The notes under the pieces were generated by a model. That model did no database searches and was not told where the DNA came from. It worked only from the letters and a program-made list of their open reading frames with translations. This document shows positions 6,002-51,596 of a DNA stretch of 64,000 bases, one piece after another; the stretch's first letter is position 1, and each line of letters begins with the position of its first letter. Both the position numbers and the translations under genes were made by a program. This stretch comes from Scyliorhinus canicula (lineage: Eukaryota). The DNA lies in contig NC_052148.1 of NCBI RefSeq assembly GCF_902713615.1, forward strand, positions 228,121,336 through 228,185,335. The letters are read 5' to 3'.

Positions 6002-8047
6002 ATGAACAGCAAAGATACTCTCGTCGTTCTCGCTCTCCTGGCACTGGGAGTGTTATCCATACAAGGTAAGAAATCTCTAGTTTCACAGCATCTATACAGC
6101 ATCTATAATGATATGGCTCCTTTTCCCTGCTGACTCTGCTGCATATTGTAGATGACATTGTACAGCAAGAGGAATTCTTCTCAGTATTTATTGAAACATA
6201 TGGCAATTGTTCAATGTTTGTGTGACTCTTTAGACAGAAGACTTCAGCAGAGTTGGGAGTATATGTAATTAGAATGAATGGGATAGATTTTATCATGGGC
6301 TTCCGAACACAAATATCAAGTTGCACGGCTGGTCCCAAGCTGGGACCATAATTATTCAGATTGGTTGCTTGGCTCACTGGATCAGACAGATGATTATCCT
6401 CACAGTGCGCCTCCTGTCAGCTGTTGGCAAACCTCCCCAGTGACAGGGAGCCATCCTGGCCAAACTCCCTGCTATCTCACCAATCACTACTGTCTCCGTT
6501 TCCTCTACTGGCGGCTGGTAAAATTCAGTCCAACGAGCATGTGTCAAAATCATTGGAAAATTGATGGAAGTTACTAAAATAATTTTGGCACAGGAAAAAT
6601 TTGAAACTCTTCTTTCGATTAGTTTGAGTGCTACCAATTATTACAACAGGAATGCAAGCCCTCCTTTCAGCTTGGGGTGCTGATTCACTGAGGTTCCTGT
6701 TGGACTGCTTGGTATCAGAAATGTGACAGTCAGGAAGAATATTATAGAGGATATCTAGCAGTTTAGTCCCAGCAGAGAATGTGGAGCACATGAGAGGGAC
6801 ACCCTGTGCAAATCTGGAAATCAATCCATTTGTTTAATTTACAGCTGCATCGATTGGAAACACAGGAATGAACCTCCGCTGCCAATGTATCAAAACACAT
6901 TCAAAATTCATCCACCCGAAGCACATCGAGAACATCGAAATTATACCAAGTGGTCCTCACTGCGGGAACGTTGAAATTATGTAAGTGTTTAATTCCTCTT
7001 CAGTTTCCTGTATTGTAAAAACACAGCAATTATTCTAGGTTTAAATAGGAGTTCAAGCTTCTTACAAGAGGGTGAATGGCTAATGATCAATGTCATTCTT
7101 CATTTCTTTCAGTGCCACCCTTAAAAGTACGAATCGTGTGTGTCTCCATCCTGATGCTGGCTGGGTGAAGAGAGTCATAGACAGGATGATCAAACAGTAA
7201 GTTTCATTCTGTGTATGGTGAGGGTGGGGAGGTTTCTTTTTTCACTGTACTTTTATTGAGTTTCCCACTTTCTGTTAGATCACAATATCTAATTCTGTCC
7301 AGTCAGGTGTGGTATAAGTCAGGCCTTCCTACATTTACTCGAACCCAACCTCAGCGAAATACTCTTGATCATTTTCTCATCATATCATTCAGAGTTGAAC
7401 GGCTGAATTGAAAACATAGGCCCCAATGTGTCAGTGAATCAGTACACCTTGTGACTGGGCACTGACCACTAGGAGAATGCCAGGGATTGCTGGTTTGTGC
7501 TGGATTAGACAACTAGAGCAGAAAGCTCCCAGTGTTGGTTACATAGACACAAACCTAGTGAAGGAAAGCAGTCCACACGGTTCCTGCTCCTCGTCACTAT
7601 CTAGTGAGTGCCCCCGTTACCACGGGTGATCTTGAAATGGGCTCAAGGCAGGTGCAGGATGGGAAATAATAGTCTCATCGTCAAACAGCTCAAGAACACT
7701 CCAGGAATGGCCACCCAAAGGAGATGCCAGAGTATATGAAACTATAGTTCCCAGATGGAACAAGATTGTCAACACAATGCTGGGCTGAAGCTGCAGTCAA
7801 TGTTGAATATGTTAATAGATGACATGACTCTTCAGGGATGATCTTCAATCTGAATGTTTAACATTCTGATTCAATTAAATATATTATTACTTAATATTTC
7901 ATTCAGCTTCAAGTAAATGTTGTAAATATATCCAGTTAATTTCCGACCTAACATATTTTGAAAGCTTTTTGTATTTCATATCTTTGTATGCCATAAACTT
8001 AATTTCTTCATTCTCTCATTTTCCATAGTTCCAAGAAGATGAATTAA
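6002..8047 (+). CDS. CXCL8: CXC chemokine, interleukin-8/CXCL8-like, copy A (4 coding exons: 6002-6065, 6845-6980, 7113-7196, 8029-8047)
   Basis: Manual splicing at GT-AG sites (intron phases 1, 2, 2) gives 303 nt encoding [100 protein letters not shown]. It has a signal peptide, CXC motif, SGPHC, EII, VCL-P and WV motifs typical of CXCL8. Coding exon sizes 64/136/84 match the mammalian CXCL8 layout as I recall it. Confidence 0.93.
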
Positions 8048-8514
8048 CCTCGCCGAAGAGAAGCTCAATTTTTCTTGTCAAGAGATTAGAAAACACTGGT
8101 AGAAAGTTGGGATTTTCCATCTGCCTGCCTGGCTTGGCGCAGACCCGTCACAGTCAATGAGGTTCAACTTAGCTTGAAGTGTTTCTGTTTATTGAACTGT
8201 TTTAGCACCTGGAACACTGAAGCATGAACATTTCCTTCGGTAATTAGGCCCCAGCTCTTTGGAATAATTACTTTTCATTGTTATTCAAACAAATTCTTAA
8301 CACTTGCTGCCATGTAGCAGTGTTACAGGATGTAGTTACTCAATGGTATATTGTTCAGTATGACAAATTGTCAGTCAAGTGTTTGCTATTTATGTCTATT
8401 TTATTATCCAGATATCTCTAAAAATGGTTGATTTTACTACTGGGTTCCAAGAATTATGTTGCATTAATAATTAAAATGTTTATTGATTTGTGATTGTTTT
8501 CCTAATAAGAATTT

Positions 8515-8701
8515 GGGCAGGATTCTCCGGTCCCCCAGCCTTGTGTTTCTCGGTGGCATTCCATTCGTTGGAGGAGGGATTCTATCCTCCTGCCGCTTGT
8601 CAATTTGATTTCCCACCGGAAAGATCCATGCCGCCGGGAAATCCGCGAGTGGGAGTGCATTGTCGGGAACAGTGAATTGCAGCGGCTGGAGAATTCCAGC
8701 C
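8515..8701. mobile_element. MITE (Harbinger-like TIRs) within the chemokine 3'UTR; also 32250-32436 and 52064-52250
   Basis: GC-rich 187-bp insert in an AT-rich UTR; ends GGGCAGGATTCTCC ... GGAGAATTCCAGCC are imperfect inverted repeats; flanked by TTT/TTT. Confidence 0.65.
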
Positions 8702-8779
8702 TTTATCTGAAGCTTTTCTCTTTAATTTATTATTATATTATTAATATGGAATGGAAAGATTGTGGCTGTACATGTCTTG

Positions 8780-8799
8780 ATTTATTTATTTAAAATAAA
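8780..8799 (+). promoter_or_regulatory. 3'UTR AU-rich element plus polyadenylation signal, copy A
   Basis: Overlapping ATTTATTTATTTA at 8780-8792 followed by AATAAA at 8794-8799 and downstream TG-rich sequence. Further ATTTA at 8388 and 8725. Typical of cytokine mRNAs. Confidence 0.7.
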
Positions 8800-9663
8800 C
8801 ATTTTAAAAATTGGAATTGTTTTGTCTTGCTTTGCAAGTTGCCAGAATGTCCTGTTTTCTAAAGAATGTGAGAATAATGCAGCAAGCAACAAAAAGGTAG
8901 CCGTAACCATTATTGATCCGCAGGTATAGAGTTTTCTTTAAATGACCTTTATCTGTGACTGACACCTTTAAGAAGTGTCCACAGGTGACCTGTGGGGGAT
9001 AGGACACATGGGTTTGCTGCATTGTTCATTCACATTCCCCGTGTGGCTTTCACTGGTGTAAAACCAACCTAAGGAGCTGATCTACTTTGAAGCTTCTGGG
9101 TAGCTTGTTAAAAAATGCAGTAGGATGAATTTCCTCCGCCTTTTCGGAATACTAGCAGGGGCTTTGGCTGAGAAAGGAACTTTGGGCGGAGGCTGCTCTC
9201 TACCTTTACAACAACAACTCGCATTATATTACACATTTGATAGAATTTTAAAAGTCCCAAGGCGTTTTCATAGCAGCAAAACATGGATATGGATCGTCGC
9301 AAGGAGATAGTTGGGCGGATGGCCAAGCGTTTTGTCACCAAGGTGGGCTCTAAGGAGGGTCTTAAGAGAGAAGAGAAAGATGGAGAGGCTCAAGGAGGCC
9401 GTCGCAGTCTGGTTATGGGTGTGTGGACATGAGTTAAGGCCTACAGTCATCAATAATGGGGAGTCCAAAACAAGGTCAGTCATTTAGTACAGAAAGGAGA
9501 ATATTTCTTCACTCAAAGGATTGTGAATCTTTGGAATTCTCAACCCTAGGAAACAATGGATTCTCAGCCATTAGCCGAGTATGAGCAAGACAGAAGCCAG
9601 AGTGTCGGGCAGGCAGTGAGCGAAGGGTTATGAAGATAATGCAGGAAGGTGGAGTTGAAGCTG

Positions 9664-9859
9664 GTTTAGCTCACTGGGGCTGGTTTAGCTCACTGGGCTA
9701 AATCGCTGGCTTTTAAAGCAGACCAAGCAGGCCAGCAGCACGGTTCGATTCCCGTACCAGCCTCCCCGGACAGGCGCCGGAATGTGGCGACTAGGGGCTT
9801 TTCACAGTAACTTCATTGAAGCCTACTCGTGACAATAAGCGATTTTCATTTTCATTTTC
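9664..9859 (+). mobile_element. tRNA-derived SINE with (TTTCA)n tail, specific to unit A
   Basis: Absent from units B and C (empty site GTTGAAGCTGAAGGG); TSD AAGCTG; A-box-like head and B-box GGTTCGATTCCC. Confidence 0.85.
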
Positions 9860-10049
9860 AAGCTGAAGGGATCAAACATGAGTAAGGGGTATATATGCCA
9901 AATCATTGATTCCCTTTGCAGGGGACTAGCTCATTTATTTGGCTTTGACATCACGATGAAGCAGTGGAGAGACATTTTAGGGGGTTTTCCCCTTCCCCAA
10001 GCTTCCGGACGCTTTTGAGAGCACGGAAGTCACAATCCTCCAGCACCAT

Positions 10050-10420
10050 CTCACCTGAGACGAGGAAGGGATTCCACTCCATGGATATGCAGCTAGTTTG
10101 TGACGGTACTCAGAGCCTCCTTCAGGTCAACACTCCACAACCAAGATTACTTCCCCCCCCCCACCCCCCCCCCCTCCCCATCCCCTCCCCACCCCCCTCC
10201 CACCAGCCCCGAAGATTTCCAGGGGTATGGGATTCCCGGCAATAGTCGAGGTGGTTCAAACTCCCAGTTGGAAACTCCCCTGCAATGTGAATTAGATAAT
10301 GTGATTCAAAACCCAAACTTTGCATGGTTCTGGTGTGCTACATCCATAATTACCAAGATAAAATTAAAAACCACTTCTGCCTTCTGGGTAACTATTTTAC
10401 AGACCTTTTCCCATCCCAGT
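10050..10420 (+). mobile_element. Decayed Harbinger/HARBI1-type DDE transposase fragment (also ~33570-33920 and ~53410-53765)
   Basis: RKGFHSMDMQLVCD, RFPGVWD and (W/C)LLGN peptides in order correspond to Harbinger NRKG-HS-N-Q-VCD, ARYPGS-HD and WLLGD motifs; interrupted by a poly-C run. Confidence 0.65.
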
Positions 10421-10619
10421 ACACCAAGATCCCAGCCTGGGGATCCTCCATGGAACACTCAACACCTCACGGGACCTCTGTAATCCAGAACTGGACCACC
10501 CCACCTACTCCAAACATTGCCCCAATCAGCCCCCCCCCCCCACCGGCCCACAGACAGTCTCCCCCAATCCACATAGCTCCTCCTGACTGCATTCCCGCCC
10601 CAACAGCCCGGTACTCACC

Positions 10620-12000
10620 CCCCACTGACTGACCCCCCCAAAAACCACCCCCAAATGAGACCCCCAACTGACACAACCTATTGATTGACCGAATGATCCA
10701 CCAACTGACACCCCTGGCTGCAACCCCCCAACTGACTCACACCCCCCGACTGACCCCCCTGACTGACTCCCCCTGACTGACTCCGCCCCCCCGACTTACT
10801 CCCCTGACTGGCTCTCCCCTGACTGACTCCCCCTGACTGACTCCGCCCCCCCCCGACTGACTCCCCCGACTGACTCCACCCCTCACCTCCTCCCAACTGA
10901 CTCCCCTGACTGCTCTCCCCTCTGGCTCACACCCACCCAGCAGAAACACCCCCAACACTTGACTGACACCCCAAGTCAGAGCCCCAACAACTGACACCCC
11001 CACCTGAGAACCTGACTGACACTCACACTGACCCTCTGACTCACCTTCTCACTGACTCCTTCCCCACTAACCCTCCCTGACTGATGCCCCCCCCAACGTA
11101 CCCCCCCCGACTGATTCTCCCGACTGACCCCCACGACTGATTCTCCCAACTGACCCCCCACAACTGATTCTCCCAAACGACCCCCCCTCGACTGATTCTC
11201 CCGACTGACCCCCCACGACTGATTCTCCCAAACGACCCCCCCTCGACTGATTCTCCCGACTGACCCCTCCCCGACTGACCCCTCCCCCGACTGACCCCCC
11301 ACGACTGATTCTCCCAAACGACCCCCCCTCGACTGATTCTCCCGACTGACCCCTCCCCGACTGATTCTCCCGAGTGACCCCCCCCGACTGATTCTCCCAA
11401 CTGACCCCCCCGACTGCTTCTCCCGACTGACCCCCCCCCCGACTGTCCCCTCCCCCGACTGACCCCCCCTGACTGATTCTCCCGACTGACCCCTCCCCCG
11501 ACTGATTATCCCGACTACTCCTTCCTAAGTGACTGCCCGCCGACTGATTCCACCCCCAACTGACTTCGCCCCCGACTCAACCCCCACCACGACTGATTCC
11601 CCCCCACCCGACTGACCCTACCCCGACTGACTTCCAGTCTTGCCCTGGCAGTCACCTCCCCGGTTGGCCCAGCCCCAACTTACTCCCCTCCCCAGAATGG
11701 CACCCCCAAGTGACTCCATCCTGACTCACCCACAGATTGACTCCCTCCTGATTGACACCCCCTGGTTGATTCCCCCCCCCCACTGACCACTCGACTGATC
11801 ACCTAATCGACCCCGTCGACACCTTCGACAGACGCCCCCTGAATGAAACCTCCTGACTGACCCTCCCCCGCCATTGACATTCTCCCCCCCCCCCCCCCGG
11901 CTGATCCTGTGTCTCCCCCAGCTGACCGACCCCTACTGATCCCCCAGACTGACTCTCCCCCAAGAGACACCCTCAACTGACTCCCTCCTGATTGACCCCC
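10620..12000. repeat. C-rich degenerate tandem array (CCGACTGACCCC / GACTGATTCTCCC), unit A; also ~34140-35560 and ~53980-54980
   Basis: Visible repeated GACTGA cores separated by C-runs; length varies among units. Confidence 0.9.
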
Positions 12001-13007
12001 AGTACTTACCGGCACTAAGGGGAGCGAATTGTTCACTGGCAAGATTCTCCATTCCGCTGGCTACGCACCCCCACCCGTGGGTTTGCTGGCAGCATCGGGT
12101 GGACACAAGGGAAATCCGATTGGCCAGCGGCAGGAACATAAAATCCCACTGCTGGCAAAGACACTCCACCAAGGGACATGTGGCTGGGGAGGGAGGGAAT
12201 TCACCTCATGGACTTTGCATTCTTATTTGCATTGGCACAATTAGCAAAACCATACCACACAAAATCATCTTTACACTGCTTTGTTCGCAAGTTAAGTTTC
12301 TTCTTTGTAGACTGTTAACCAGAGACCCTGGAGCTCTGTACATAGCTAACATTAGCATTGCTCTGTCCTGCCCAGGGCTCTCCTGCGCAACAATCTCCAA
12401 ATATGAGATCCTGGGCAGAAGGTGCACTGTTTATTTGTGCCTCTGGCTGTCTCTACCATGTACCAAAATGATCCATCTTCACAGTCCTCTTGCCTTGCTT
12501 GCCAGCAGCTAGAAAATGGAAGAAGCTCTTCTCCATGATTTCACACCAAAGCCCGTACATACAGGATGCATAACGTCAAGTGTTCATCAATGGCTCGTGA
12601 CCTGCGCATTGCTGCCACCTCTGGCCAGAAGGCTATACACAGCCTCATGTTGTTCTCATTTTAAAGCCAGTCATGGCAGCCATTCTTAATTTAAACACCG
12701 GTAGTGGCCGTTGGGCGCTTCTCCCTCGATCGGAATCACCGCGGGAGTGCTGCGACTCATCACTCCATGACCCTCCCAGCACCCACCAGGGACACCTCCC
12801 CTCAGCCCCCCCCCCCTCCTTTTGTGCTGCCAATTTCTGCTCCTTTGGACCTGGAGACACTGGTTCCTCGCTGATGCTTTTTGTTTTGGTTGGCGATCCG
12901 TTGCAGTTTTCAGTCCAATGGCCACATTTTCTATTTTATTCTCAGAATAAAGGCGTCACCGGGCAAAGCCAACATTTATTACCCTTTCCTGGTTCCCCAA
13001 AGACATT

Positions 13008-13614
13008 GGGCCGGAATCTCTTTGCCCTGGGCCGGGCCGGAGAATCCCCGTGACTGGCGCGAATCGCACCACGCCGCCCCGACGCCAGGATGCGATTCTC
13101 CGATCCATTGGCGCAGACATGGTCGGCGCACCGCCAGTCAGGGCCCGCTCTACGCAGCCCCCCTGCCGATTCTCGGCCCGGGATGGGCTGAGCAGCCGTC
13201 GCAAAAAACCCGAGTTCCACTGGCGCCGTTCACAACTGTTCACAGCCGGCGGGACCTCGGTGTGGAAGGATCAGGGAGTGGCTTGTGGAGGCGGGAGGGG
13301 GGATTGACCCCGGGGGGGCCTCCAATGTGGCCTGGCCCGTGATCGGGGCCCAGCAATCGGCAGGCCAGCCTCTCTGGCTAGGGGCCTCCTTCCTTCCGCG
13401 CCAGCCCCTGTAGCCCTGCGCCATGTTGTATCGGGGGCGGCACGGAGAAGGGGGCCACTGCGCACGTGAGCATTGGCGCCGGTGGCACTGTGCATGCACG
13501 GCCCCCTGTCAGGGCCAGAATTGCTGATCCTGACGCCGTGTTGACGCTGCCGAGAAACGCAACGGCGTTTCCGATGGTCTCAACTTTTAGCCTCAGGATC
13601 ACAGAATCCCGCCC
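13008..13614. mobile_element. PIF/Harbinger-type MITE (also 55987-56637; only the right end survives in unit B, ~36061-36167)
   Basis: TIRs GGGCCGGA(A/T)TCTC ... AGAATCCCGCCC with a 3-bp TSD ATT/ATT. Confidence 0.8.
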
Positions 13615-13830
13615 ATTGTATTGAACAAGACCGCTTGTGAGGTCACAGAGGCCAGTTACGAGTTAACCACAATGGTGTGAAGCTGAAGTTGAATATAAAC
13701 CAGATCAGATAACACGGAACGTTTGCTTCCCTAATGAATCTATGTGGCCTACTCGATGTTCCTGTGACAATCAAACAACTTCCTCACCATTCGCACCGAT
13801 AAAGGGTGAGATATCTGAGAAATTGAATCT

Positions 13831-14183
13831 GTTCGGGGCCCACCGATTCACGGGCAGGCCTGTGCCGTGGGGGCACTCTATTGTTCTGCACCAGAGGCCA
13901 TGGTCCTCCGCCATGCCCGGTGCAAAAGTGAATCCCTCTGAGCATGCGCGGGAATGACGCCAGCACGCGCTGGTGCTCCCGCACATGCGCCGACTCGCAC
14001 CAGCTGGCGGAGGCCCTTCGGCGCCGGTTGGCGTGGTGCCAAGCCCCTTTCCCGCTGGCTGGCGGGGCGCCAACCACTCTGGGGCGAGCCTAGCCCCTGA
14101 AGGTGCAGAGAACCAGGAAATGGTTCACGCCACTCCATCCCGCCGGGACCCCCCGCCCCGCTGGGTACAAGAGAATCCCACCC
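13831..14183. mobile_element. Right-hand fragment of a related GC-rich MITE, units A and B only (B ~36384-36736)
   Basis: Ends in GAGAATCCCACCCC (same TIR family); occupies the place of ~1.8 kb present in unit C (56861-58636). Confidence 0.55.
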
Positions 14184-14505
14184 CTAATTTATCGAGTCCA
14201 ATGACTCTTTGTCAAAGGTGTGCAGGTTAGGTGGATTGGCCTTGCTAAACTGACCCTTAGTGTACAAAGATGTGTAGGTTATATGGGGTTGCAGGGATGG
14301 AGTGTGGGGGTGGGCCTAGATGGGGTGCTCTTTCAGAGTGTCAGTGTGGATTCGATGGGCCAAGGAGCCTCCTTCTGCACTGTAGGAATTCTATGTACTT
14401 GACCTCATTCTGAGCAATATACTTGTGGCAGATGTGGCTGTCCATGACAGGATTGGTAGAAGTGATCACCACACAGACCCTAAGGGCCAAAGTGAATCTT
14501 CACAC

Positions 14506-17500
14506 TGTTATGGGAGAGGTGTTTTCAGAACCCCAAAATGTATCATGGAGTTCAACCAACCTCTCCCTTTAATGTATTGTTGCTTTTGAAGCACACGGCT
14601 TGGTCTCCAGGTGTGGTATTACAATTATGGACACATGGGTTTTTAAACACAAAACAATGTTTATTCCATGAATTCAACTTAACCTTTTCAAATAAACATT
14701 GGATCCCTTAACACCCCTTACGTCAAAGATAACCCCGAATATAATACAACACTAAATAATCCTTCAAAATGTTCCTTCAAACCTCCAAAAGACTTAACAC
14801 CTTTAAACAGAAACACATCAGGTTAAAGACATTACTATTATGATTTTAAATGACCCAAATGATTCAGAGATAGTCTTTTCTGGCAGAGATCACCGCAGAT
14901 CCAGCTCACTGCAAACACAGACACACCCAAGCTCTTTTCCTCAAAAATGAACCTAAACACTGCAAATTGGCTGAGCTAAAACCCAGCTCCACCCACACTC
15001 TGACATCACTTCAGTAATATGAGCTGCTTTATTTCTTAAAGGTACATCGCTTAAACATCAATTTCTTAAAGGTACTCTCACATGACACCTCCCCCCAGAA
15101 ACAAAAGAAACCATCAATTTCAAGATGGTTTCATTTTTCACTTTTGCACCATCCACTAAGAAATGTACACAGTAAATATAATTTTTCGTTTCACAAAAAA
15201 ACACACACAAACAGGCATAATAATAAAGTCCATGTTTCCCGTTCTTCCTCCAACCAAAATCCTTCTCGATTGACAGTCTCTTTGAACAAGAAAGTCAATG
15301 CACGATTCATCCATTCCTCTACGCCTCGGCATTTCTCTTTAAAGTCAGATACTTTAGTTCAATCTGACCACAGATCCCCTTGCAATTCTCCAGCACAGGA
15401 GCATCGGTTATCACAGCTTTCAGGCCATCACATGCCTGTTGAAAGTCCGCTGTCCATTGAAATTTTTAACGTTTCTTTAGCAAGTCCATCAGTGGAGTAA
15501 TCACGCCACAAAACTTTTGCACAAAGGTTCGATCAAATCCACTCATGCTACGAAATCACATTATTTTCCTTCGTCTTGAGGGTATTGGAAACTCCTCAAG
15601 GAAAGTGATTCGGGCTCCTCCAAATTAACTTTCGGCTAGGTTCATCACCAAACCCGTCTCCTGAAGTGGATCGAAGAACTCCATACGATGCTTTAAATGT
15701 TCTTTCCATGTCTGGAAGTTGGAAATAAAAGCAGATTGTCCCACTTTCTCACGGCAATCCTTCAAACGTGGGAAAGTGTAAGAGTCCGTTCTTGTAACTG
15801 CATTCACCTTTCGATAGTCCACACACAACCGTTGGGTACTGTCTGGTTTAGGTACCATCACTATGGGTGAGCTCCATTGGCTGCAACCCACGTTAATTAT
15901 GCCATTTTTCAGCATACTCTCAATCTCTCTGTTAACCTATGCCAATTTTAAAGGATTAAGCCTATATGGATGTTGTTTGATAGGAGCAGCATTTCCCACA
16001 TCTACATCATGTATAGCCATTTTAGTACTTCCCAATTTATCTCTACAAACTTGCCCATGTGATATCAATAACTCTTTCAGGTCAGTTCGTGTTTCCTCTG
16101 GAAGGTAACTTTACAATTCATCCCAATTTTTAAGAACATCCTCATTTTCCAATTTAATTTGAGGTATGTCAAATTCACAGTTAACTGGATTTGGTTTGTC
16201 ACTTTGAGTTAGAATCATTAAAACTTCCCTTTTCTCTCCTTCCCTTTCAAAGTACCTTTTAAACATATTCACGTGACACATTTGGTGAGTCTTCCTTCTA
16301 TCTGGTGTTTTTACCACATAATTCACCTCACTTAATTTCCTTTCAATCTGATACAGTCCACAAAACCTAGCTTTTAAAGGTTCACCTACCACTGGTAACA
16401 ACACTAAAACTTTATCTCCACTGACAAAACTAGGAACTTTGGATTTCTTGTCCGCTACTCGTTTCATCACATTTTGTGCAACTTTCAAATGTTGTCTAGC
16501 CAATTCACCTGCTTTATTTAATCGTTCCCTAAAATTTGACATGTAATTCAACAGTGTAATTTCAGATTTCTCAACCACCGATTTTTCCTTAATCAATTTA
16601 AGTCGTCCTCTTACCTCATGACCAAAAATTAGTTCAAAAGGACTAAATTTGGTCGACTCATTAGGTGCATCACTAATTGCAAATGATACGATTGGAATTC
16701 CTTTATCCCAATCCTCTGCATAATGTTGACAATACGCCCTCAACATTGTCTTTAATGTCTGATGCCACCTTTCTAACTCTCCCTGCGATCCTGGATAGTA
16801 CGCAGTTGATTTAAATTGTTTTATTCCTAAGATATCCATAACTTCTTTGAAAAACTGTGAATTAAAATTTGATCCTTGATCCAATTGAATTTCTGTGGGT
16901 AGTCCATATCTAGTAAAGAATTTAAGTAACTTCTCCACAGTCCTTTTAGCTGTAATATTACGGACGGGAATGGCCTCTGGAAACCTAGCAGACACATCCA
17001 TTATAGTCACAAGATATTGATTCCCACTTTTTGTTTCAGGAAGCGGTCCTACGCAATCAATTAGGACCCTTGTAAAAGGTTCCTCAAATGCTGGAATGGG
17101 TATTAAGGGCGCTGCTTTTATCACTGCTTGAGGTTTCCCTATCACTTGACATTTGTGACATGATTGACAAGATTTAACTACACTTTTATGTAGCCCAGGC
17201 CAATAAAAATGTTTCTGGATTTTAGCTTGAGTTTTCCTTATTCCCAAATGACCACCCACTGGTACCTCATGTGCAACTCGCAACACCGCCTTTCTATACC
17301 CTACCGGCAATACTATTTGATGAACTTCTGCCCACTTTTCATCCGTCTGCATATGTACAGGTCTCCATTTTCTCATCAAGACATCACTTTTACAGTAATA
17401 ACACTCTGGTATACTCTCAGATTCCTCTTCCGTATATGCTTTCTGATATATCCGTTTTATTTCTAAATATTTCTGTTGTAACTCCGCCAATTTTCCTGAA

Positions 17501-19465: not shown

Positions 19466-19503
19466 TGATAGTGTGTAAAAAAGACATTGAAGTGTCTGAT
19501 CAG

Positions 19504-19695
19504 CAGGGTGGAACAGTGGTGCAGTGGTTAGCACTGCTGCCTCACGGCACCAAGAATTCAGGTTTGATCCCAGCCCCGGGTCACTGTTCGTGTGGAGTTT
19601 CCGCATTCTCCCCATGTCTGCATGGGTCTCATCCTCACAACCCAAGGATGTGCAGGTGGATTGGCCATGCTAAATTGCCCCTGAATTGGAAAAAT
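19504..19695 (+). mobile_element. tRNA-derived V-SINE (HE1-like); also ~42084-42275
   Basis: A-box GGTGCAGTGGTTAGC, B-box-like GGTTTGATCCC and V-domain-like GTGTGGAGTTT..TTCTCCCC..GGATTGGCCATGCTAAATTGCCCC. Confidence 0.8.
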
Positions 19696-19744
19696 TTTAA
19701 AAATGAAACAAAAAAGAAGTGTCCAATCAGCCGTGATCTTATTA

Positions 19745-20080
19745 AATAACAGACCAGGCACGACGGGCTGAATGACCTACTCCTGTTCCTATGTTCCAGG
19801 TTGGTTCGGCATGATTTCCCTTTCACAAAACCATGTTGACTCTGCCTGATTACCTTGAACTTATCCAAGTGGCCTCCTTTCACTTCTTTAATAATGGCTT
19901 CCAACATTTTCCCTATGACAGATGTGAAGCTAACTGGCCTGTACTTACCCCCTCTCTATCTCCCTCTCTTTTTGAATAATGGAGTTGCGTTTACTACCTT
20001 CCAATCTAATGGAACCGTCCACAAATCTTTGGAAAATTCAAACTAAATGCATCAACTATCTCACTAGCCACTTCTTTCAA
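19745..20080 (-). mobile_element. CR1-type LINE fragments (also ~42325-42660)
   Basis: MLEAIIKE...IRQSQHGFVKGKSC-TNL is the CR1 RT N-terminal motif. Confidence 0.75.
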
Positions 20081-32514: not shown

Positions 32515-32534
32515 ATTTATTTATTTAAAATAAA
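32515..32534 (+). promoter_or_regulatory. ARE plus polyA signal, copy B
   Basis: Identical motif; AATAAA at 32529-32534. Confidence 0.7.
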
Positions 32535-40000: not shown

Positions 40001-40970
40001 CTGATATATCCGTTTTATTTCTACAAATTTCTGTTGTAACTCCGCCAATTTTCCTGAACTAAAAATATCTGCCTCATCCTCCACCTGTTCTTGTTCTTTT
40101 TCAACCATCTGATCAAAGATCGATTCTGATAATTGCACTTCAACTTCATCTTCACTCTTTGATTTCTCCTCCTGTCTTAACCTGTCACTTTGCGACCGGG
40201 TTACTACACAATCCGGAAAAATCCCAGGATATTCATCCTTCAACCCTTCTGTTGTCTGATTTTCCACTGGCTTATCAACCACAGTAGGCATCACTCCCAC
40301 CTGTGATCCAGATATATCATTACCCAAGATAAACTGTATTCCTGGACAAGATAGTTGATCTATTACTCCTACTACCACTTCACCACTCTTCACTGGACTT
40401 TCCAACCTTACCTTATATAATGGAATGCTACTCCTCTCACCTTGAATTCCACATATCACCACCTTTTCTGGCAACATTCTTCCCAAACTACATAATTCCT
40501 CATCTCTTGCCATTAAAGACTGACTAGCCCCTGTATCTCTTAAAATTGTGACTTCTTTACCTGCTCCTCCTGATACACATGAGTAAACATTACCCACACA
40601 AGTTAATTCTTTAAAGACATCTGGCAACTTCTTAAAAATTACATATTGAACAGGCTGTACAATTGTTTGCACCTCCTTTGCTTCCCTTGGGCTTTCCTTT
40701 ACCACTCCAACAAATCCCATTGTTTTATCCTGTTTTACCACATCAGCCTTCCCAGTGCTTTTCTTCAACCACCAACACTGTGACTTTACATGGCCTAGTT
40801 TATTACAGTGAAAACATTTGAAACTTTTCATCTTTTTCAACCCTCCTGGATTTCTTTTTTAATTTGAGGTACACTCTCTTTACTGTCTCCCATCAGATCA
40901 CCTTTACCTTTACCACTTGAGTATTTCTCATGTCCCCAGTTTCTATCCCTCACCGGCTGAAACTGATGTC
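37059..40970 (-). mobile_element. Same Gmr1-like element, unit B (3' LTR 37059-37640)
   Basis: ORFs 39143-40840 (knuckle-PR-IN), 38669-39136 and 38183-38473 (partial RT); same LTR and PPT. Confidence 0.9.
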
Positions 40971-42045
40971 TGGTAACAGCGGGAAAGAAGCTGTTTTTGA
41001 ATCTGTCTGTGCAGACTTTACCAGACTTTTGTATCTCCTGCCCGATGGAAGAAGTTGGAAGTGTGAGTAAGCCGGGAGGGAGGGGTCTTTGATTATGCTG
41101 CCCGCTTTCCCAAGGCAGCGGGAGGTGTAGATGGAGTCAATGGATGGGAGGAGGGTTTGTGTGATGAACTGGGCTGGGTTCACAACTCTCTGAAGTTTCT
41201 TGCGGTCTTGGGCCGAGCAGTTGCCATACCAGGCTGTGATGCAGCCCGATAGGATGCATTCTCTGGTGCACCTGTAAAAATTGGTAAGAGTCAGTATGGA
41301 CATGCCGAATTTCCTTAGTTTCCTGAGGACGTAAAGGCGCTGTTGTGCTTTCGTGGTGGTAGCGTTGACATGGGTGGACCAGGGCAGATGTTTGGTGATG
41401 TGTACACCGAGGAATGTGAAGCTGTCAACCATCTCCACCTCGGCCCCGTTAATGCTGACAGGGGTGTGTACAGTTCTTTGCTTCCTGAAGTCAATGACCA
41501 GCTCTTTAGTTTTGCTGGCATTGAGGAATAGATTGTTGTTGTTACACTACTCCACTAGGTTCCCTCCTGTAATCTGACTCGATGTTGTTCGAGATCCGAC
41601 CCACTATGGTTGTGTCGTTTGCAAACTTGTAAATGGAGTTGGAACCAAATTTTGCCACGCAGTCGTGTATGCATAGGGAGTATAGTGGGGGGCTAAGTAT
41701 GCAGTCTTGCGGGGCCCCGGTATTGAGGATTATTATGGAGGAGGTGTTGTTTATTCTTACTGATTGTGGTCTGTGGATCAGAAAGTCGAGGATCCGGTTG
41801 CAGAGTGAGGAGCCAAGTCCTAGGTTTTGGAGCTTTGATATGAGCTTGGCAGCGATTATGGTGTTGAGGGCAGAGCTGCAGTCAATAAATAGGATTCTGA
41901 TGTAGTAGTCCCTTGTTGTTGAGATGCTCCAGGAATGAGTGAAGGGCCAGGGAGACGGTGTCTGCTGTGGACCGGTTGTGGCGGTAAGCAATTGCAGTGG
42001 ATCTAAGCATCCTGGGAATATGGAGTTGATGCGCTTCATGACCAA
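40968..42045 (-). mobile_element. Rex-Babar-clade LINE RT fragment, second copy
   Basis: ORFs 40950-41438 and 41542-42225 carry the same motifs. Confidence 0.85.
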
Positions 42046-43232
42046 TGATAGTGTGTAAAAAAGACATTGAAGTGTCTGATCAGCAGGGTGGCGCAGTTTT
42101 GCAGTGGTTAGCACTGCTGCCTCACGGCACCAAGGATTCAGGTTTGATCCCAGCCCCGGGTCACTGTTCGTGTGGAGTTTCCGCATTCTCCCCATGTCTG
42201 CGTGGGTCTCATCCTCACAACCCAAGGATGTGCAGGTGGATTGGCCACGCTAAATTGCCCCTGAATTGGAAATTTTTAAAAAATGAAACAAAAAAGAAGT
42301 GTCCAATCAGCCGTGATCTTATTAAATAACAGAGCAGGCACGACGGGCTGAATGGCTTATTCCTATTCCTATGTTCCAGGTTGGTCCGGCATGATTTCCC
42401 TTTCACAAAACCATGTTGACTCTGCCTGATTACCTTGAACTTATCCACGTGGCCTCCTTTCACTTCTTTAATAATGGCTTCCAACATTTTCCCTATGACA
42501 GATGTGAAGCTAACTGGCCTGTACTTACCCCCTCTCTATCTCCCTCTCTTTTTGAATAATGGAGTTGCGTTTACTACCTTCCAATCTAATGGGACTTTCC
42601 CCAAATCTTTGGAAAATTCAAACTAAATGCATCAACTATCTCACTAGCCACTTCTTTCAAGAATAATTTAATTCCTGTTTTAATTTGGTCCATGATGATC
42701 AGTGTAGAAACTGGGCCTGGGAAGTAAGGTTATCTTGCTGAGAAAAGATCAGAAATCATTGCTGAGGAACAGGACCCCTCCACCACACTCCTGATCAAAC
42801 AAGCGCCCCACTCCCACTCCCATCTACAGCAGCCTCAGAGCCCCCTACCAGACCTCAACTTTCCGCCTGTGAAGCAAGCCATCTTCAGGAATAGGAGGTG
42901 CAACAGTTGCCAGCAGCCCACCCAAACAATGATCAATTTGTGGAGGAGTAAACTGAGTTGAGCTTTTGGATTCCCTTCGCTGGGACAAGTGCGATCAGCA
43001 CACTATCGGATTCTCACTTTGTGCCGGTAAAACCAGTTTCTACCACTGAGCATGAAAACAATCTCAGTTTCTACTGAAACCTGTTCGCACTGAATTCTGT
43101 GATCCTCGCCAATTAGAAGTTGTCTTTGCAATTTTAATGTAACTACTCGACCCAATGGTAAAGTGAGTGACTGTAAGCTAGAACATTTTCCAGCTAAAAA
43201 GAGGTTTATGCAATCATGTCAATAATCAACGA

Positions 43233-43426
43233 TGTGGAGATGCCGGCGTTGGACTGGGGTGAGCACAGTAAGAAGTCTTACAACACCAGGTTAAAGTCCA
43301 ACAGGTTTGTTTCAAACACGAGCTTTCGGAGCACGGCTTGATTCACCTGAAGAAGGAGCCGTGCTCCGAAAGCTTGTGTTTGAAACAAACCTGTTGGACT
43401 TTAACCTGGTGTTGTAAGACTTCTTA
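43233..43426. mobile_element. Penelope-like element remnant forming a 71-bp-arm inverted repeat; present only upstream of copy C
   Basis: Arms 43268-43338 and 43357-43427 with one mismatch; 13-bp TSD CAATAATCAACGA; empty site at ~20640-20652. Confidence 0.75.
43344..43378 (+). ncRNA. Putative minimal type I hammerhead ribozyme motif (Penelope-associated)
   Basis: CAC-CUGAAGA-A-GGAGC(CGU)GCUCC-GAAA-GC-UU-GUG: core CUGANGA and GAAA, 5-bp stem II, palindromic AGCU helix III, 3-bp stem I. Confidence 0.55.
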
Positions 43427-46138
43427 CAATAATCAACGAGTAAGCAATCTTTCCTCTAATTTGAACTATTATCTTTTCCACCGAGAGGGTTTGTGTCAGC
43501 TATTGCATTACCTGTATTGTGAACCACAATGGCTCAGAGGTCGGTTTGTATTCACGATCATTAGGTGTGTCACCTGAGAAAAGAGAAATGCAAGAGCGCG
43601 ATAAAGGCAGGAAATTACGCAGTGTGGGGTTTAATTTGTTATGCTTCAGAAAGGCCATGACAGATGGAAGAGGGATAAACTTTCAAGTGATGAAATAACA
43701 TGTGTAAGATTAAAATGTTGGCTTTTTTAGAGTAATTATCGCACTCAGGTGTCACTGGCAACACTGGTTTTGATTTACAAATGCCTGCAGGTCCTCTGGT
43801 TAGCCAGCAACGAGACATCTGGCTGCACGTTCAGCCCTTTCACCTGGAGAAAATTACCCAGGAGGCTGACAAGCTGCAGCCGCATATACGCACTTCACTC
43901 CCCACACACACGCCATTCCAGCCAACAAGATGGCAGCAATGATGCCGAGCTGGAGGCCCTGCTGGACCCGGTGGAGGAGAGGCGGTTGACTCTGTATTCC
44001 GGCCCGGGATGGAGGCTGCCAGCCCGCCGCTGACTGCCGTGCCTAGGTGCCTAGGTGCAGGTTGCAGAGGCTGTCAGCGGCATGAGCAATACCGTCCGGA
44101 CGGGCCAGCAGTGCCTGTAAAAACTGCACAACCTCCTCAGGCCGGCCAGGGTGAGTAGGCAGCACTTTGCCACTGGCACTAACTCATGTCCACACACCCA
44201 TAACCCAACTATCCCCCCACCCCGGAGGGCGGTGAAACCCCCATCCTCCACCAGCTGCCGACCCCCATACCAGCCAGTATGGCCGGGTGCCCTGGCCACT
44301 GAAGCCACCAACTAACTACCCCCTGGGCTGCATGCGTTTGGACTGTCTAAGACTGTACGTTTTCTGTAACTCCACTCCCCTCCCCACTCCACAGGGGAAG
44401 GGCAGCCATAGCCGGCGGGTGTGGGAGAAAACTGGAGGACTGTCGGACCTGCAGCCCCTCATCAGGCAGAGCAGAGGGGCCTGGACATGGTCAGCGTCCT
44501 GGAGGAAAGGGCGGACGCCGGGGTGGAGATCGGCCATGGGCAAGGAAGTGAGATCCAGTTGAGTCCCGGTTGCCAGTGACATGTGAGTCAACAACCCACC
44601 CCCACCCTCGCCCCACATCGCCATTACCCCACCCTCACCCCCACACCACGCTCATCTCCACCTGCACCCCGACACCACCCTCACTCCCACCCTCAGCATC
44701 ACCCACACTTTCACCCCCCCACCAACGGGGACCCAGGTCACAGGATGGGAATCACTCCCAATGTACTGTTTGGGAATCCACCTAGACGTAAGGCCAGAAA
44801 GTTAGACAGCGATTACGTTGGCCAGGGGGCTAGGGCACGGTACACTCCGCGGCCCCAGCCTGGCATGCCCGTAAGGGCTACAATGGATGCTGCCCTTGAG
44901 TGGGCCGTCTGATGTCCCTCCGGTGGGTGGCGTCCGGGTGGAGGGTGTATGGCGGAGGGTGGGGTGCGGGGGTGGGGGCTTAGGGGTATCCATTAGAATA
45001 AGTAGAGCAACAATTTAAGAACTTTTTTAAAAATTGAGGAGGTTCAGGAATTTCTGATCAATACTTTCTCTGAATCACAGAAACCCACCTTCACATTATT
45101 CTCAAAACAGTCAAGGTATTCAGAGCCATTTCAGAAATATTGAATTCCTTGCTTTTGTTCAAAACGCTTGCAATTTTAAATTCTAATTTAAATAATATTT
45201 TTGACACTCTACACTGTTATCCAGGAGACAAATGATAATTTTCTTTGGTATAAAATGTAACAGGATGAATGCATTTAAATTGTTTCGTATTTTGCATATG
45301 TGTGAAATTGAAAAGAAGTCAGCAAGCCATCAATTTTATGTATGATTCCGTTCGGGGGCTGCAGAGATTCAAGAAAGCAGCTCACCACCACCTTCTGAAG
45401 GGCAATTAGGGATGGGCAATAAATGCTGGCCTTGCCAGCGATGCCCACATCCCGTTCAAATGAGCAGAGGTGTCGTTCAGAGCTACGTAATTTGGAAACT
45501 AGGCAACACCGCATATATCATCGTACCTCATTTTAACTTCTTCAGCCACTTCTTCAGCCGGCACAGCTTGCACGACAGGAGAATTCTCCCTGAGGATCTC
45601 CAACACATCCTGCATCCAGATCCTGGAATGAACCAATGTCTTGCATCAATAGTTCATTGATAATCATAAGGTAAGGATCTTAAAATGGCAAGATGATTTG
45701 TAGCTGTCCAATATGTTGATCGCCAAATAAAACAAGGGTCACTTCTTTGCATAGTTTCAGCTCTATGCTGCAATGTACACAAGAACACCCCGAAACTTGC
45801 ATATTCTATGATGTCCATGAGTCACTTCACCTCCGGCAATGGGTGCTGGCCCTTCTAGCTAAAGCTTGAGGAATGAAGGCTGTATGACACTTCACCAATT
45901 TGGCCTTTCCCTCCCAGGGTTTCATGGGCACTGACCTCTCGTTCCTTCGAGCTTGGCTTTGTGCAACAGAATTTTCAAATGAGCAATCAGCTTGCAAACC
46001 CATCCGTCATAAGTGGCTGATTTTGCTTGAGGAGAAAATGAATGCACCACAGAGATATTCCCCTTCACCCTTTGAGTTGTTGCTTCATCCGCCAGTTGTC
46101 TGTTTCGAAGGGGAAGAATGAATAAGTCCACAAGGGTT

Positions 46139-46511
46139 AGGGGCAGCAGGGTAGTAGGGGCAGCAGGGTAGCATGGTGGTTAGCATAAATGCTTCACAGC
46201 TCCAGGGTCCCAGGTTCGATTCCCGGCTGGGTCACTGTCTGTGTGGAGTCTGCACGTCCTCCCCCTGTGTGCGTGGGTTTCCTCCGGGTGCTCCGGTTTC
46301 CTCCCACAGTCCAAAGATGTGCGGGTTAGGTGGATTGGCCATGCTAAATTGCCCGTAGTGTCCTAATAAAAGTAAGGTTAAGGGGGGGGGTTTGTTGGGT
46401 TACGGGTATAGGGTGGATGCGTGGGTTTGGGTAGGGTGATCATGGCTCGGCACAACATTGAGGGCCGAAGGGCCTGTTCTGTGCTGTACTGTTCTATGTT
46501 CTATGTTCTAT
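46139..46511 (+). mobile_element. Full-length V-SINE (HE1-like) with (GTTCTAT)n tail, specific to unit C
   Basis: B-box GGTTCGATTCCC, V-domain, CR1-like 3' tail, TSD GGTT; absent in units A and B. Confidence 0.9.
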
Positions 46512-47272
46512 GGTTTATGAGCACCATCCAATGATTTAATGAAATATCTGAAAGGAACCCGCTTAAACATGGTAGGCTGACGAACTATAGTCACGTGTGT
46601 GACTCGGAGACCTTTCTGGTCTGTCCTCTCAGCCAATTGTCTCAGGGGCCTTGCGACATAACTTGGCCGCTTAATGGATAGTAGATGCTCACACCGCACA
46701 GCTATACATCAGGGAGACCAGATATCAGATTACTCATTTGCTGGTGAGGAAAGCTACAATTTAGATAACTGGCTGACAAATCAAAGGCAGTGTGAGGTCA
46801 GGGGGTTAAACCCTCAGACAATGCAAAACGTGGCAAGTTCACAAAAGCATCGGGTGCCTCAGCCACTCAAATTGTCCTTCCCTGTTCCAGCGTCCTGACA
46901 TTTCATGAAGAATTTCACCATCCATCCTGATGTCACACTCACAGACATCTACTGGATATGTCACAACCCAGTCTTCTAACTCAGTAGGATGGGAACACAA
47001 GCCACATCCATAATATCCATTAAACCTGGCCGTATTCTGCACGTCAGCACAAATGGGAAAATCTACACAGCAGCGATGGAAGCATCTACTATTTACCAGC
47101 ACCCCCTCAAATCAACCCCTTCTTCTGACAGTCAGCTCACTTCATTGCCAGCATCATCCAGGAACATTTCATTTTTGGATTGAATTTTCTGCACCATAAT
47201 CCATCTGGAATAAGATTACCCAGTTCTGAGTTTTGGAGGAAGCCCATCAATCTAGAGGGGAAAATCAGAAAG

Positions 47273-48796
47273 AACAGGAGGCAGGAAAAGAACAGAAAGC
47301 AGGAGAGAACAGAAATCAAGAGAGAGCAGGAAGCAGGAGAGAGGAGGAAGCAGGAGAGAGGAGGAAGCAGGAGAGAGGGCAGGACGCAGGAGGGAGAGCA
47401 GAAAGCCGGAGAGAGAGCAGGAAGCAGGAGGGAGCAGGAAGCAAGAGGGAGAGCAGGAAGTAGGAGATGAGAGCAGGACGCAGGAGGGAGAGCAGAAAGC
47501 AGGAGAGAGAGCAGGAAGCAGGAGAGAGCAGGAAGCAGGAGATGACAGCAGGAAGCAGGAGAGAGAGCAGGAAGCAGGAGAGAGCAGGAAGCAGGAGAGA
47601 GCAGGAAGCAGGAGAGAGAGCAGGAAGCAGGAGAGAGAGCAGGAAGTAGGAGAGAGCAGGAAGCAGGAGAGCAGGAAGCAAGAGGGAGAGCAGGAAGTAG
47701 GAGAGGGCAGGAAGCAGGAGAGCAGGAAGCAGGAAACATCAGGAAATAGGAAACCGCAGGAGGGCAAGTGAGAGCAGGAAGTAGGAGACAGCAGGACATA
47801 GGAAGGGGTAGGACGTAGGAGAGTACAGGAAGCAGGAGAGAGTAGAGAATATGTGAGAGCATGAAGTAGGAGAGAACAGAAAGTATAATAGAACAGGAAC
47901 TAGGATAGAGCAGAAAGTATGAATGAGCAGGAAGTGGGAGAGAGGAGGAAGTGGGAGAGACAGGAAATGTGAGAGAGTAGGAGACAGCAGGATTCAGGAA
48001 AGAACAGGAAGCAGGAGAGAGTAGGAGAGAGCAAGAAGCAAGAGAGCAGGAAGCAGGGGAGAGGAGGAAGCGGGGAGAAGAGGAAGCAGGGGAGCAGAGG
48101 AAGCAGGAGAGAGGAGGAAGCAGGAGAGAGGAGGAAGCAGAAGAGAGGAGGAAGCAGGAGAGAGGAGGAAGCAGGAGAGAGGAGAAAGCAGGGGAGCGGA
48201 GGAAGCAGGAAGCAGGGGAGAGGAGGAAGCAGGGGAGAGGAGGAAGCAGGGGAGAGGAGGAAGCAGGAGAGAGGAGGAAGCAGGAGAGAGGAGGAAGCAG
48301 AAGAAAGGATGAAGCAGGAGGAAGCAGAAGAGAGCAGGAAGCAGGGGAGAGGAGGAAGCAGGAGAGAGAGGAGGAAGCAGGAGAGAGAGCAGGAAGCAGG
48401 AGAGAGAGCAGGAAGCAGGAGGGAGAGGAGGAAGCAGGAGGAAGCAGGAAGCAGGAGAGATGAGGAAGCAGGAGAGAGGAGGAAACAGGGGAGAGGAGGA
48501 AGCAGAAGAGAGGATGAAGCAGGAGGAAGCAGGAGAGAGGAGGAAGCAGGGGAGAGGAGGAAGCAGGAGGGGAGGAAGCAGGAGAGAGCAGGAAGCAGGG
48601 GAGAGGAGGAAGCAGAAGAGATTAGGAAAGAGGAGAGAGCAGGAAAGAACAGGGAGCAGGGGAGAGCAGGGAGTAGGAGAGAGCAGGAAGCAGGGGAGAG
48701 GAGGAAGCAGGAGAGAGTAGGCAGCAGGGGAGAGGAGGAAGCAGGGGAGAGGAGGAAGCAGGAGAGAGGAGGAAGCAGGGGAGAGGAGGAAGTGCG
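47273..48796 (+). repeat. Purine-rich compound minisatellite, unit C (shortest)
   Basis: Same units. Confidence 0.95.
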
Positions 48797-49383
48797 GCTT
48801 GGGGCTCCATCTCTGCTCTGTCTCATTGTCCCTTCCACAGGATTACATAGAATGTACAGCACAGAAACAGGCCATCCAGCCCAGCAAAACCAAGCCAGTC
48901 TTTATGCTCCAGTTGAGCCTTTTCCCACCTTTTCCCATCTAAATCTATCATTGCAATTCTCTTTTTCCTCCTTCCACAGTATCCCCTGAAATAAATCGAT
49001 CATTTGCTTCAACCATTCCCTGTTGTAGTGTGTTCGACAATCTCATCGCCCTTCATTAGTAGTTTTGTCTGAATTATTTACTGCACTAACATCTAGGGAG
49101 GAATTCTAACTTGACCAGCTGTATTTCTGCCTTGATCGTCTTCTTCATGGACAGTGTTCATTGTAAAATTAATTTTCACTTTAATATCACCTACATTGAA
49201 TGTGTCAATGTGTTCATTACAAAACCTTCCATTCATTTTAGTTGGAATTAAGAGTTAATTTTGACCACCTGGCTTTGAAAAAGAAAGTAAAGATTCTAAT
49301 TGAAGTGCTCCGATAGATGTAATTAACAAATAAACAAATTTCCAGTTTAATTTTACCATACATTGTTTCATCAATAATTAGCT

Positions 49384-49462
49384 TTGTTGTAATTCCACAC
49401 ATCCGGGGAAATTCCAAAATGAGCCAACTCCTCCGAGTGAGTCACAGATTTCTGGCTATAAA
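49384..49462 (+). promoter_or_regulatory. Proximal promoter of copy C with consensus NF-kB site
   Basis: GGGGAAATTCC 49405-49415 (fits GGGRNWYYCC), TGAGTCA 49438-49444, TATAAA 49457-49462. Confidence 0.82.
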
Positions 49463-49552
49463 TACAGCATGTGAGCCTCAGTAGGTCAGTCACAGGCAGC
49501 AGCAGCAGCACAGCAGCAAGAAGATAAAAGATCACCAAACAAGTAAAGCACA

Positions 49553-51596
49553 ATGAACAGCAAAGATACTCTCGTCGTTCTCGCTCTCCTGGCACTGGGA
49601 GTGTTATCCATACAAGGTAAGAAACCTCTAGTTTCACAGCATCTATACAGCATCTATAATGATATGGCTCCTTTTCCCTGCTGACTCTGCTGCATATTGT
49701 AGATGACATTGTACAGCAAGAGGAATTCTTCTCAGTATTTATTGAAACATATGGCAATTGTTCAATGTTTGTGTGACTCTTTAGACAGAAGACTTCAGCA
49801 GAGTTGGGAGTATATGTAATTAGAATGAATGGGATAGATTTTATCATGGGCTTCCGAACACAAATATCAAGTTGCACGGCTGGTCCCAAGCTGGGACCAT
49901 AATTATTCAGATTGGTTGCTTGGCTCACTGGATCAGACAGATGATTTGCCTCACAGTGCGCCTCCTGTCAGCTGTTGGCAAACCTCCCCAGTGACAGGGA
50001 GCCATCCTGGCCAAACTCCCTGCTATCTCACCAATCACTACTGTCTCCGTTTCCTCTACTGGCGGCCGGTAAAATTCAGTCCAACGAGCATGTGTCAAAA
50101 TCATTGGAAAATTGATGGAAGTTACTAAAATAATTTTGGCACAGGAAAAATTTGAAACTCTTTTTTCGATTAGTTTGAGTGCTACCAATTATTACAACAG
50201 GAATGCAAGCCCTTCTTTCAGCTTGCGGTGCTGATTCACTGAGGTTCCTGTTGGACTGCTTGGTATCAGAAAGGTGACAGTCAGGAAGATTATTATAGAG
50301 GATAGCTAGCAGTTTAGTCCCAGCAGAGAATGTGGAGCACATGAGAGGGACACCCTGTGCAAATCTGGAAATCAATCCATTTGTTTAATTTACAGCTGCA
50401 TCGATTGGAAACACAGGAATGAACCTCCGCTGCCAGTGTATCAAAACACATTCCAAATTCATCCACCCGAAGCACATCGAGAACATCGAAATTATACCAA
50501 GTGGCCCTCACTGCGGGAACGTTGAAATTATGTAAGTGTTTAATTCCTCTTCAGTTTCCTGTATTGTAAAAACACAGCAATTATTCTAGGTTTAAATAGG
50601 AGTTCAAGCTTCTTACAAGAGGGTGAATGGCTAATGATCAATGTCATTCTTCATTTCTTTCAGTGCCACCCTTAAAAGTACGAATCGTGTGTGTCTCCAT
50701 CCTGATGCTGGCTGGGTGAAGAGAGTCATAGACAGGATGATCAAACAGTAAGTTTCATTCTGTGTAGGGTGAGGGTGGGGAGGTTTCTTTTTTCACTGTA
50801 CTTTTATTGAGTTTCCCACTTTCTGTTAGATCACAATATCTAATTCTGTCCAGTCAGGTGTGGTATAAGTCAGGCCTTCCTACATTTACTCGAACCCAAC
50901 CTCAGCAAAATACTCTTGATCATTTTCTCATCATATCATTCAGAGTTGAACGGCTGAATTGAAAACATAGGCCCCAATGTGTCAGTGAATCAGTACACCT
51001 TGTGACTGGGCACTGACCACTAGGAGAATGCCAGGGATTGCTGGTTTGTGCTGGGTTAGACAACTAGAGCAGAACGCTCCCAGTGTTGGTTACATAGACC
51101 CAAACCTAGTGAAGGAAAGCAGTCCACACGGTTCCTGCTCCTCGTCACTATCCAGTGAGTGCCCCCGTTACCACGGGTGATCTTGAAATGGGCTCAAGGC
51201 AGGTGCAGGATGGGAAATAATAGTCTCATCGTCAAACAGCTCAAGAACACTCCAGGAATGGCCCCAAAGGAGATGCCAGAGTACATGAAACTATAGTTCC
51301 CAGATGGAACAAGATTGTCAACACAATGCTGGGCTGAAGCTGCAGTCAATGTTGAATATGTTAGTAGCTGACATGACCCTTCAGGGATGATCTTCAATCT
51401 GAATGTTTAACATTCTGATTCAATTAAATATATTATTACTTAATATTTCATTCAGCTTCAAGTAAATGTTGTAAATATATCCAGTTAATTTCCGACCTAA
51501 CATACTTTGAAAGCATTTTGTATTTCATATCTTTGTATGGCGTAAACTTAATTTCTTCATTCTCTCATTTTCCATAGTTCCAAGAAGATGAATTAA
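49553..51596 (+). CDS. CXCL8: CXCL8/IL-8-like chemokine, copy C (exons 49553-49616, 50396-50531, 50664-50747, 51578-51596)
   Basis: Same structure and identical protein; synonymous CAG, TCC and GGC changes relative to copy A. Confidence 0.93.

Follow-up and report, generated by a model that had tools for sequence, protein, structure and literature searches.

A tandem array of CXCL8-group chemokine genes encoding one identical protein in the catshark Scyliorhinus canicula

Human CXCL8 is a single-copy gene with the tripeptide ELR ahead of its CXC motif; its promoter uses NF-kB and AP-1, and its 3' untranslated region (UTR) is AU-rich. In several non-mammalian vertebrates the CXCL8 group is multi-copy, with CXCL8b.1-b.3 in tandem on zebrafish chromosome 7, five copies in Xenopus, three in chicken and four in the elephant shark (Nomiyama et al. 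2013, PMC3568907). [quoted passage not shown] The feature under study, 6002-51596, runs exactly from the ATG of the first to the stop codon of the third of three interleukin-8 (IL-8)-like genes. These genes form a genuine tandem array, real but fairly ordinary for an immune gene. We consider it quite probable that the array comprises three units in the window and a fourth gene on the same chromosome, that these are CXCL8-group genes lacking ELR whose protein is kept by purifying selection, that the units exchange sequence or are gained and lost, and that the whole would act as a dosage array. The locus resembles those of zebrafish, Xenopus, chicken and elephant shark in the lineage-specific multiplication of CXCL8-group genes (in tandem in zebrafish), but the catshark copies encode an identical protein and the repeated unit is a 20-kb segmental repeat with transposons and minisatellites.

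Self-BLAST of the window resolved three direct, head-to-tail units of 20-23 kb, here lettered A to C, each with one complete gene (Table 1). The long repeats are 96-98% identical between units, and the start codons of genes A and B are 23,779 bp apart, those of B and C 19,772 bp. The first 381 positions of unit A align to B 20778-21157 and to C 43476-43856, and A 1-2659 aligns to C 43476-46138 at 97.4%. Beyond the end of unit C only matches to dispersed repeats were seen, and a tblastn search found no further gene copy or fragment within the window. No other host gene was found there, the large open reading frames (ORFs) outside the three genes being minisatellite read-through or pieces of Gypsy-type pol.

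The coding exons measure 64, 136, 84 and 19 nucleotides in all three copies, every intron is GT-AG, and the 303-nucleotide reading frame yields the same 100-residue protein each time. Within the coding sequence (CDS) the copies differ only at positions 105 (A, G and G in A, B and C), 123 (A, A and C) and 174 (T, T and C), all of them synonymous third positions in exon 2 (6885, 6903 and 6954 in copy A). Intron 1 of A differs from that of B at 13 sites. Private deletions mark two of the genes: 44 bp in intron 3 of copy B, at 31160/31161 (corresponding to A 7382-7425 and C 50933-50976), and 2 bp in copy C (A 7712-7713). A preliminary description of the window had reported tandem amplification with at least three intact copies of identical protein, three synonymous coding differences, roughly a dozen differences between A and B in intron 1, a window start inside unit A, and intact promoters, splice sites, AU-rich elements and polyA signals. 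The present results bear this out: the counts match, the window does open within the head of unit A, and all copies have GT-AG introns, a TATA box, a polyA signal and AUUUA motifs.

From about -150 to the ATG, including the 5'UTR, the three promoters are identical save for one base in an NF-kB-like site; given this variant, copy C could respond differently to stimulation. The 3'UTRs hold three to four AUUUA motifs each, counted up to 8784 in copy A. Evidence for expression is indirect. Among runs whose RNA nature is a guess, drawn from at least eight studies, the share of sampled words present was 56-89% for exon 4 plus the 3'UTR and 25-41% for the whole gene region, the latter close to the 33% expected for exons only. 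In DNA-like runs 66-78% of words were present. An inverted-repeat element suspected in the 3'UTR was not borne out.

By exact protein look-up, the identical protein is held in RefSeq as "interleukin-8-like" from S. canicula (XP_038648278, 279, 280 and 282), so the genes are already annotated and the array is not new to public annotation. No published description of it was found in the literature searched. In GCA_902713615.2 a single 277-Mb chromosome carries four genes for this protein, with ATG-to-stop lengths of 2046, 2044, 2044 and 2002 bp in the public gene table. The window copies measure 2046 bp (A), 2002 bp (B) and 2044 bp (C), the last two lengths following from the private deletions, and comparison of the two sets places a fourth copy, of 2044 bp, outside the window. 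Since the homology of unit C ends within the window, whose first base falls 17 bp into the head of a unit, an upstream position is the more likely one for the fourth copy. Further upstream copies had been anticipated in the preliminary description; the additional gene exists, and its upstream placement is what the unit ends suggest. A like array occurs in S. torazame (GCA_047496885.1), with four genes of the same 100-residue architecture on one chromosome (XP_072351834/835/837, which are identical, and XP_072351838).

The protein has a signal peptide followed by a mature chemokine of about 78 residues with four cysteines. Pfam PF00048 (IL8) matches residues 33-91 (E=2e-16, 60.3 bits against a cut-off of 21.3), and the cysteines C34-Q-C36, C61 and C77 are invariant in an alignment with shark and chicken IL-8. 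In a PDB search the best solved relative was human IL-8, with 83.5 bits over residues 2-97, followed by CXCL7 (67 bits), CXCL1 (64), CXCL10 (49), CXCL13 (47) and CXCL12 (24). All of the best 120 among 959 profile hits bear the name IL-8 or IL-8-like, and the animals they represent are cartilaginous fishes, birds, reptiles and amphibians. The same four-exon pattern is reported from every vertebrate IL-8 gene compared in one study (PMC7687281). The blocks CQCIKT, HPK and SGPHC are conserved between the catshark protein and human CXCL8, but the tripeptide before CXC is NLR (residues 31-33) and the ELR motif is absent. Fish IL-8 proteins mostly lack ELR yet still attract neutrophils (PMC7687281; PMC6145007), and NLR in place of ELR argues against a mammalian-type ELR+ chemokine, not against the CXCL8 group. 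Membership of that group, as the CXCL8/IL-8-like identity first proposed would have it, appears supported by the profile and PDB scores; the trees took in chondrichthyan IL-8-like proteins only. Those trees contain several old paralog lineages, and in them the array copies and one Mustelus gene form a well-supported clade (98/92). Neutrophil specificity of the array chemokine is plausible.

The "catshark IL-8" of published phylogenies is the cDNA CAD91126 (W0TYK0; XP_038648283) (PMC7687281). This protein and Triakis scyllium IL-8 (Q8UW91) are likewise CXCL8-group members without ELR, but CAD91126 belongs to a different, older paralog lineage, having 103 residues, 63-65% identity to the array protein and a separate, well-supported clade. 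XP_038648283 lies on the array's chromosome, and its accession number comes directly after those of the array, which is the one hint of synteny with other CXC genes. With its best match in S. torazame it shares just 86% identity, against 98-99% for the array protein, and so evolves far faster.

Selection was assessed in a 4.35-kb block aligned in all three copies, which contains 107 variable sites, with tree-length divergence taken per region. Variable sites number 35 of 1697 in the introns (2.1%), 25 of 672 in the 5' flank (3.7%), 35 of 848 in the 3' flank (4.1%), 9 of 768 in the 3'UTR (1.2%), 0 of 87 in the 5'UTR (0%) and 3 of 303 in the CDS (1.0%). In copy A the 3'UTR sites that tell the copies apart lie at 8071, 8238, 8289, 8291, 8478, 8527, 8635, 8645 and 8650. 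Changes fell on none of 235 nonsynonymous and on 3 of 65 synonymous sites (P=0.0098). The introns, with their rate of 35/1697, would predict 4.8 nonsynonymous changes where none was seen (P=0.0075), and for all three hits to be synonymous by chance, given two transitions and one transversion, the probability is 0.017. Synonymous sites are not depleted and have changed at or above the neutral rate, so that recent homogenisation of the exons alone cannot explain the identical proteins. Purifying selection within the array has moderate support on these figures. The interspecies comparison is the stronger line: across the two Scyliorhinus species, 1-2 of the 100 residues of the array protein differ (98-99% identical), against 14 of 103 (86% identical) for a further IL-8-like paralog from that chromosome (P0147 vs P0023), used as a yardstick, and by this measure purifying selection on the array protein is well supported. 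The preliminary description had inferred purifying selection on all copies and had called its statistical support weak; the support is better than first thought, both from the three tests and from the conservation between species, and what is less certain is that selection acts on each copy separately.

At residue 81, all four S. canicula copies have D and all four S. torazame copies have E (D81E), one of the latter also having F at residue 70 (L70F). E81 is likely the ancestral state; the Mustelus sister gene has it too, as do several other paralogs. Gene length is similarly uniform in each species, at 2019 bp in three S. torazame copies and 2012 bp in the fourth, against 2044-2046 bp in S. 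canicula together with the one copy bearing the 44-bp deletion. An array older than the species split and without exchange would need four parallel changes, which leaves amplification after the split in each species or exchange of sequence between copies; the Scyliorhinus arrays would thus either have amplified independently or be evolving in concert. The earlier reading passed over both processes, one or other of which is needed for a species-specific residue in every copy. No divergence date for the two species was found in the literature searched.

Within the window, the proportions of the A, B and C branches change strongly from block to block over five blocks of the unit (chi-square 34.4, 8 degrees of freedom, P=3.5e-5), the outlier being B in the upstream block and C downstream. 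In the gene block, pairwise divergence is 1.5% for B-C, 1.6% for A-B and 1.8% for A-C, so that B is as near to C as to A, even though A and B have the retroelement segment in common. A and B have diverged less in the gene block (1.58%) than in that segment (2.78%), and non-CpG sites give 1.40% and 2.10% respectively (P=0.008). Inside the gene block, a search for clustering of variant patterns that would mark conversion tracts gave no significant result (P=0.17 and 0.10). The mosaic of divergence fits unequal crossing-over or gene conversion between units, to which local differences in mutation rate may contribute.

Long repeats that are 96-98% identical and contain minisatellites are hard to assemble, and the copy number is known from assembly, yet it is very improbable that haplotypes or mis-joined reads of a single-copy gene have been laid in tandem by mistake. 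Four copies are more than two haplotypes can supply, and the units differ by 1.5-4.5% in sequence as well as in structure, through a short interspersed nuclear element (SINE) in A only, the 44-bp deletion in B only, kilobase inserts in B, the retroelement segment of A and B, and minisatellite length. The independent chromosome-level assembly of S. torazame also contains four copies, and similar clusters occur in other elasmobranch assemblies. If the copies were neutral young duplicates, their proteins would be identical from recency alone and no selection would act on the extra genes. That there are just three coding differences and that the gene blocks are so little diverged (1.5-1.8%) is in keeping with this account, which we nonetheless hold to be unlikely, as 4.8-6.0 nonsynonymous changes would be expected at intron or flank rates where none was seen (P=0.002-0.008), and the three differences found are all synonymous. 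The protein is, moreover, nearly unchanged between species while a paralog on the same chromosome has changed at 14% of its residues, and the protein of the fourth copy is identical as well.

A stronger contender, although still the less likely account, is that identity is due mainly to gene conversion or unequal crossing-over, with selection acting on the array as a whole and not on each copy. It would explain why D81 or E81 is common to all copies of a species and why gene length is uniform within each, and it draws further on the mosaic branch proportions and on the gene block being less diverged than its flanks. The three synonymous differences in exon 2 and the 35 differences in introns, however, indicate a coding region free of recent homogenisation, selection is required for synonymous changes to exceed nonsynonymous ones as they do, and the variant patterns within the gene block are not significantly clustered. 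This explanation complements the preferred one, a dosage array whose protein is kept by purifying selection, more than it excludes it. Several points do weigh against the preferred explanation. The copy number is taken from assemblies and not from read depth; the within-array test of selection draws on just three substitutions; P0147 and P0023 are taken to be orthologous on their best match alone; the comparison of species involves one residue and gene lengths and does not separate concerted evolution from independent amplification; the gene block may be less diverged in part because it mutates more slowly than methylated transposon DNA; the RNA nature of the runs bearing mature mRNA is only guessed; and the dosage function, though plausible, is something we infer.

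Every unit brings its own near-identical promoter, with NF-kB-like and AP-1-like sites and a TATA box, four exons and a 3'UTR with AUUUA motifs, and under the proposed mechanism purifying selection holds the encoded protein unchanged. By analogy with human CXCL8, the genes may be induced through the NF-kB- and AP-1-type sites, and their mRNA may turn over fast through the AU-rich elements. Units would exchange sequence, or come and go, by unequal crossing-over or gene conversion between the long direct repeats, and the 17-bp minisatellite flanking these repeats may promote unequal exchange, a process that would both change copy number and keep the copies alike. The output of a single granulocyte-attracting chemokine would in this way be multiplied, giving a larger inflammatory burst on stimulation, and the array would be a dosage array, not a diversifying one.

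The locus offers a clean example, dated by sequence, of the growth of an inflammatory chemokine locus in a slowly evolving vertebrate lineage, with long direct repeats as units, a constant protein and signs of exchange. For catshark immunology, studies of expression will assign reads wrongly if they overlook the four identical genes, and the "catshark IL-8" of the literature is the other paralog. The general picture is unchanged: both the tandem birth and death of chemokine genes and CXCL8 groups with multiple copies are familiar.

Several IL-8-like RefSeq genes each, with proteins more than 90% to fully identical, were also seen in Cetorhinus maximus, Carcharodon carcharias, Amblyraja radiata and Leucoraja erinacea. 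Cluster look-ups gave at least nine accessions in Cetorhinus, four in Carcharodon, three identical ones and others in Amblyraja, and several in Leucoraja. These clusters belong to other paralog lineages than the catshark array and are known here as accessions, not by genomic arrangement. That elasmobranchs (catsharks, basking and white sharks, skates) repeatedly build identical IL-8-like arrays and keep homogenising them is a tentative proposal, slightly less likely than not. If it holds, copy number and not sequence diversification would be the selected variable for this inflammatory chemokine, and the two Scyliorhinus arrays would represent parallel amplifications or else one common array under concerted evolution, possibly polymorphic in copy number.

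Table 1. Positions of units, genes, promoter motifs and repeats in the window
Feature	Position	Strand	Details	Basis
Unit A	1..20760	+	truncated by window start, ~17 bp inside unit head	self-BLAST
Unit B	20761..43458	+	B-specific head insertions ~21158-21889 and 22695-24965; lacks A 12506-13506	self-BLAST
Unit C	43459..58951	+	last unit in window; homology to A and B stops at 58951 (A 14507, B 37060)	self-BLAST
Gene copy A	5854..8815	+	CDS exons 6002-6065, 6845-6980, 7113-7196, 8029-8047; 3'UTR ends ~8815	splice signals and reading frame
Gene copy B	29633..32550	+	CDS exons 29781-29844, 30624-30759, 30892-30975, 31764-31782	splice signals and reading frame
Gene copy C	49405..52364	+	CDS exons 49553-49616, 50396-50531, 50664-50747, 51578-51596	splice signals and reading frame
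NF-kB-like site	A 5854-5864, B 29633-29643, C 49405-49415		GGAGAAATTCC in A and B; GGGGAAATTCC in C (G where A and B have A)	
AP-1-like TGAGTCA, copy A	5887-5893		downstream of NF-kB-like site	
TATA box, copy A	5906-5913			
17-bp purine-rich minisatellite, unit A	3410..5241	+	repeat unit AGAGCAGGAAGCAGGAG; ~106 copies; ~0.75 kb upstream of gene A	Tandem Repeats Finder (TRF)
Same minisatellite, units B and C	B 26642-29020, C 47271-48792		~136 copies in B, ~89 in C	TRF
tRNA-derived SINE	9664..9856	+	unit A only; tRNA-like head 9677-9766	alignment gap; ARAGORN
Retroelement segment shared by A and B	A 13507..20654, B 36060-43235	-	~7.1 kb	
Gypsy-type integrase frames	16111-18042, 39143-40840	-		
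Reverse-transcriptase fragment	18962-19645	-	within the segment shared by A and B	
Frame matching Pfam ALKBH8_N	18250-18975		within the segment shared by A and B	

The 17-bp minisatellite may favour unequal exchange between units or affect the promoters. It also yields long spurious ORFs on both strands. A second, C-rich minisatellite of 28 bp, with higher-order periods of 55, 95 and 141 bp, follows genes A and B some 3 kb further downstream, at 11091-11516 and 34633-35100, and the counterpart of this region in unit C aligns poorly (~79%). The public gene table lists a 59-residue product spanning 22309-28616 in the head of unit B, upstream of gene B only; it overlaps the B insert at 22695-24965, the minisatellite and a 309-residue ORF (23704-24633, minus strand) that gave no Pfam hit, and probably does not represent a genuine host gene. 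Unit C has homologs for no more than the first ~1 kb of the retroelement segment common to A and B and lacks the remaining ~6 kb. The site of the SINE in unit A is empty in B and C, and the alignments on either side of it overlap by 9 bp, which points to a target-site duplication.

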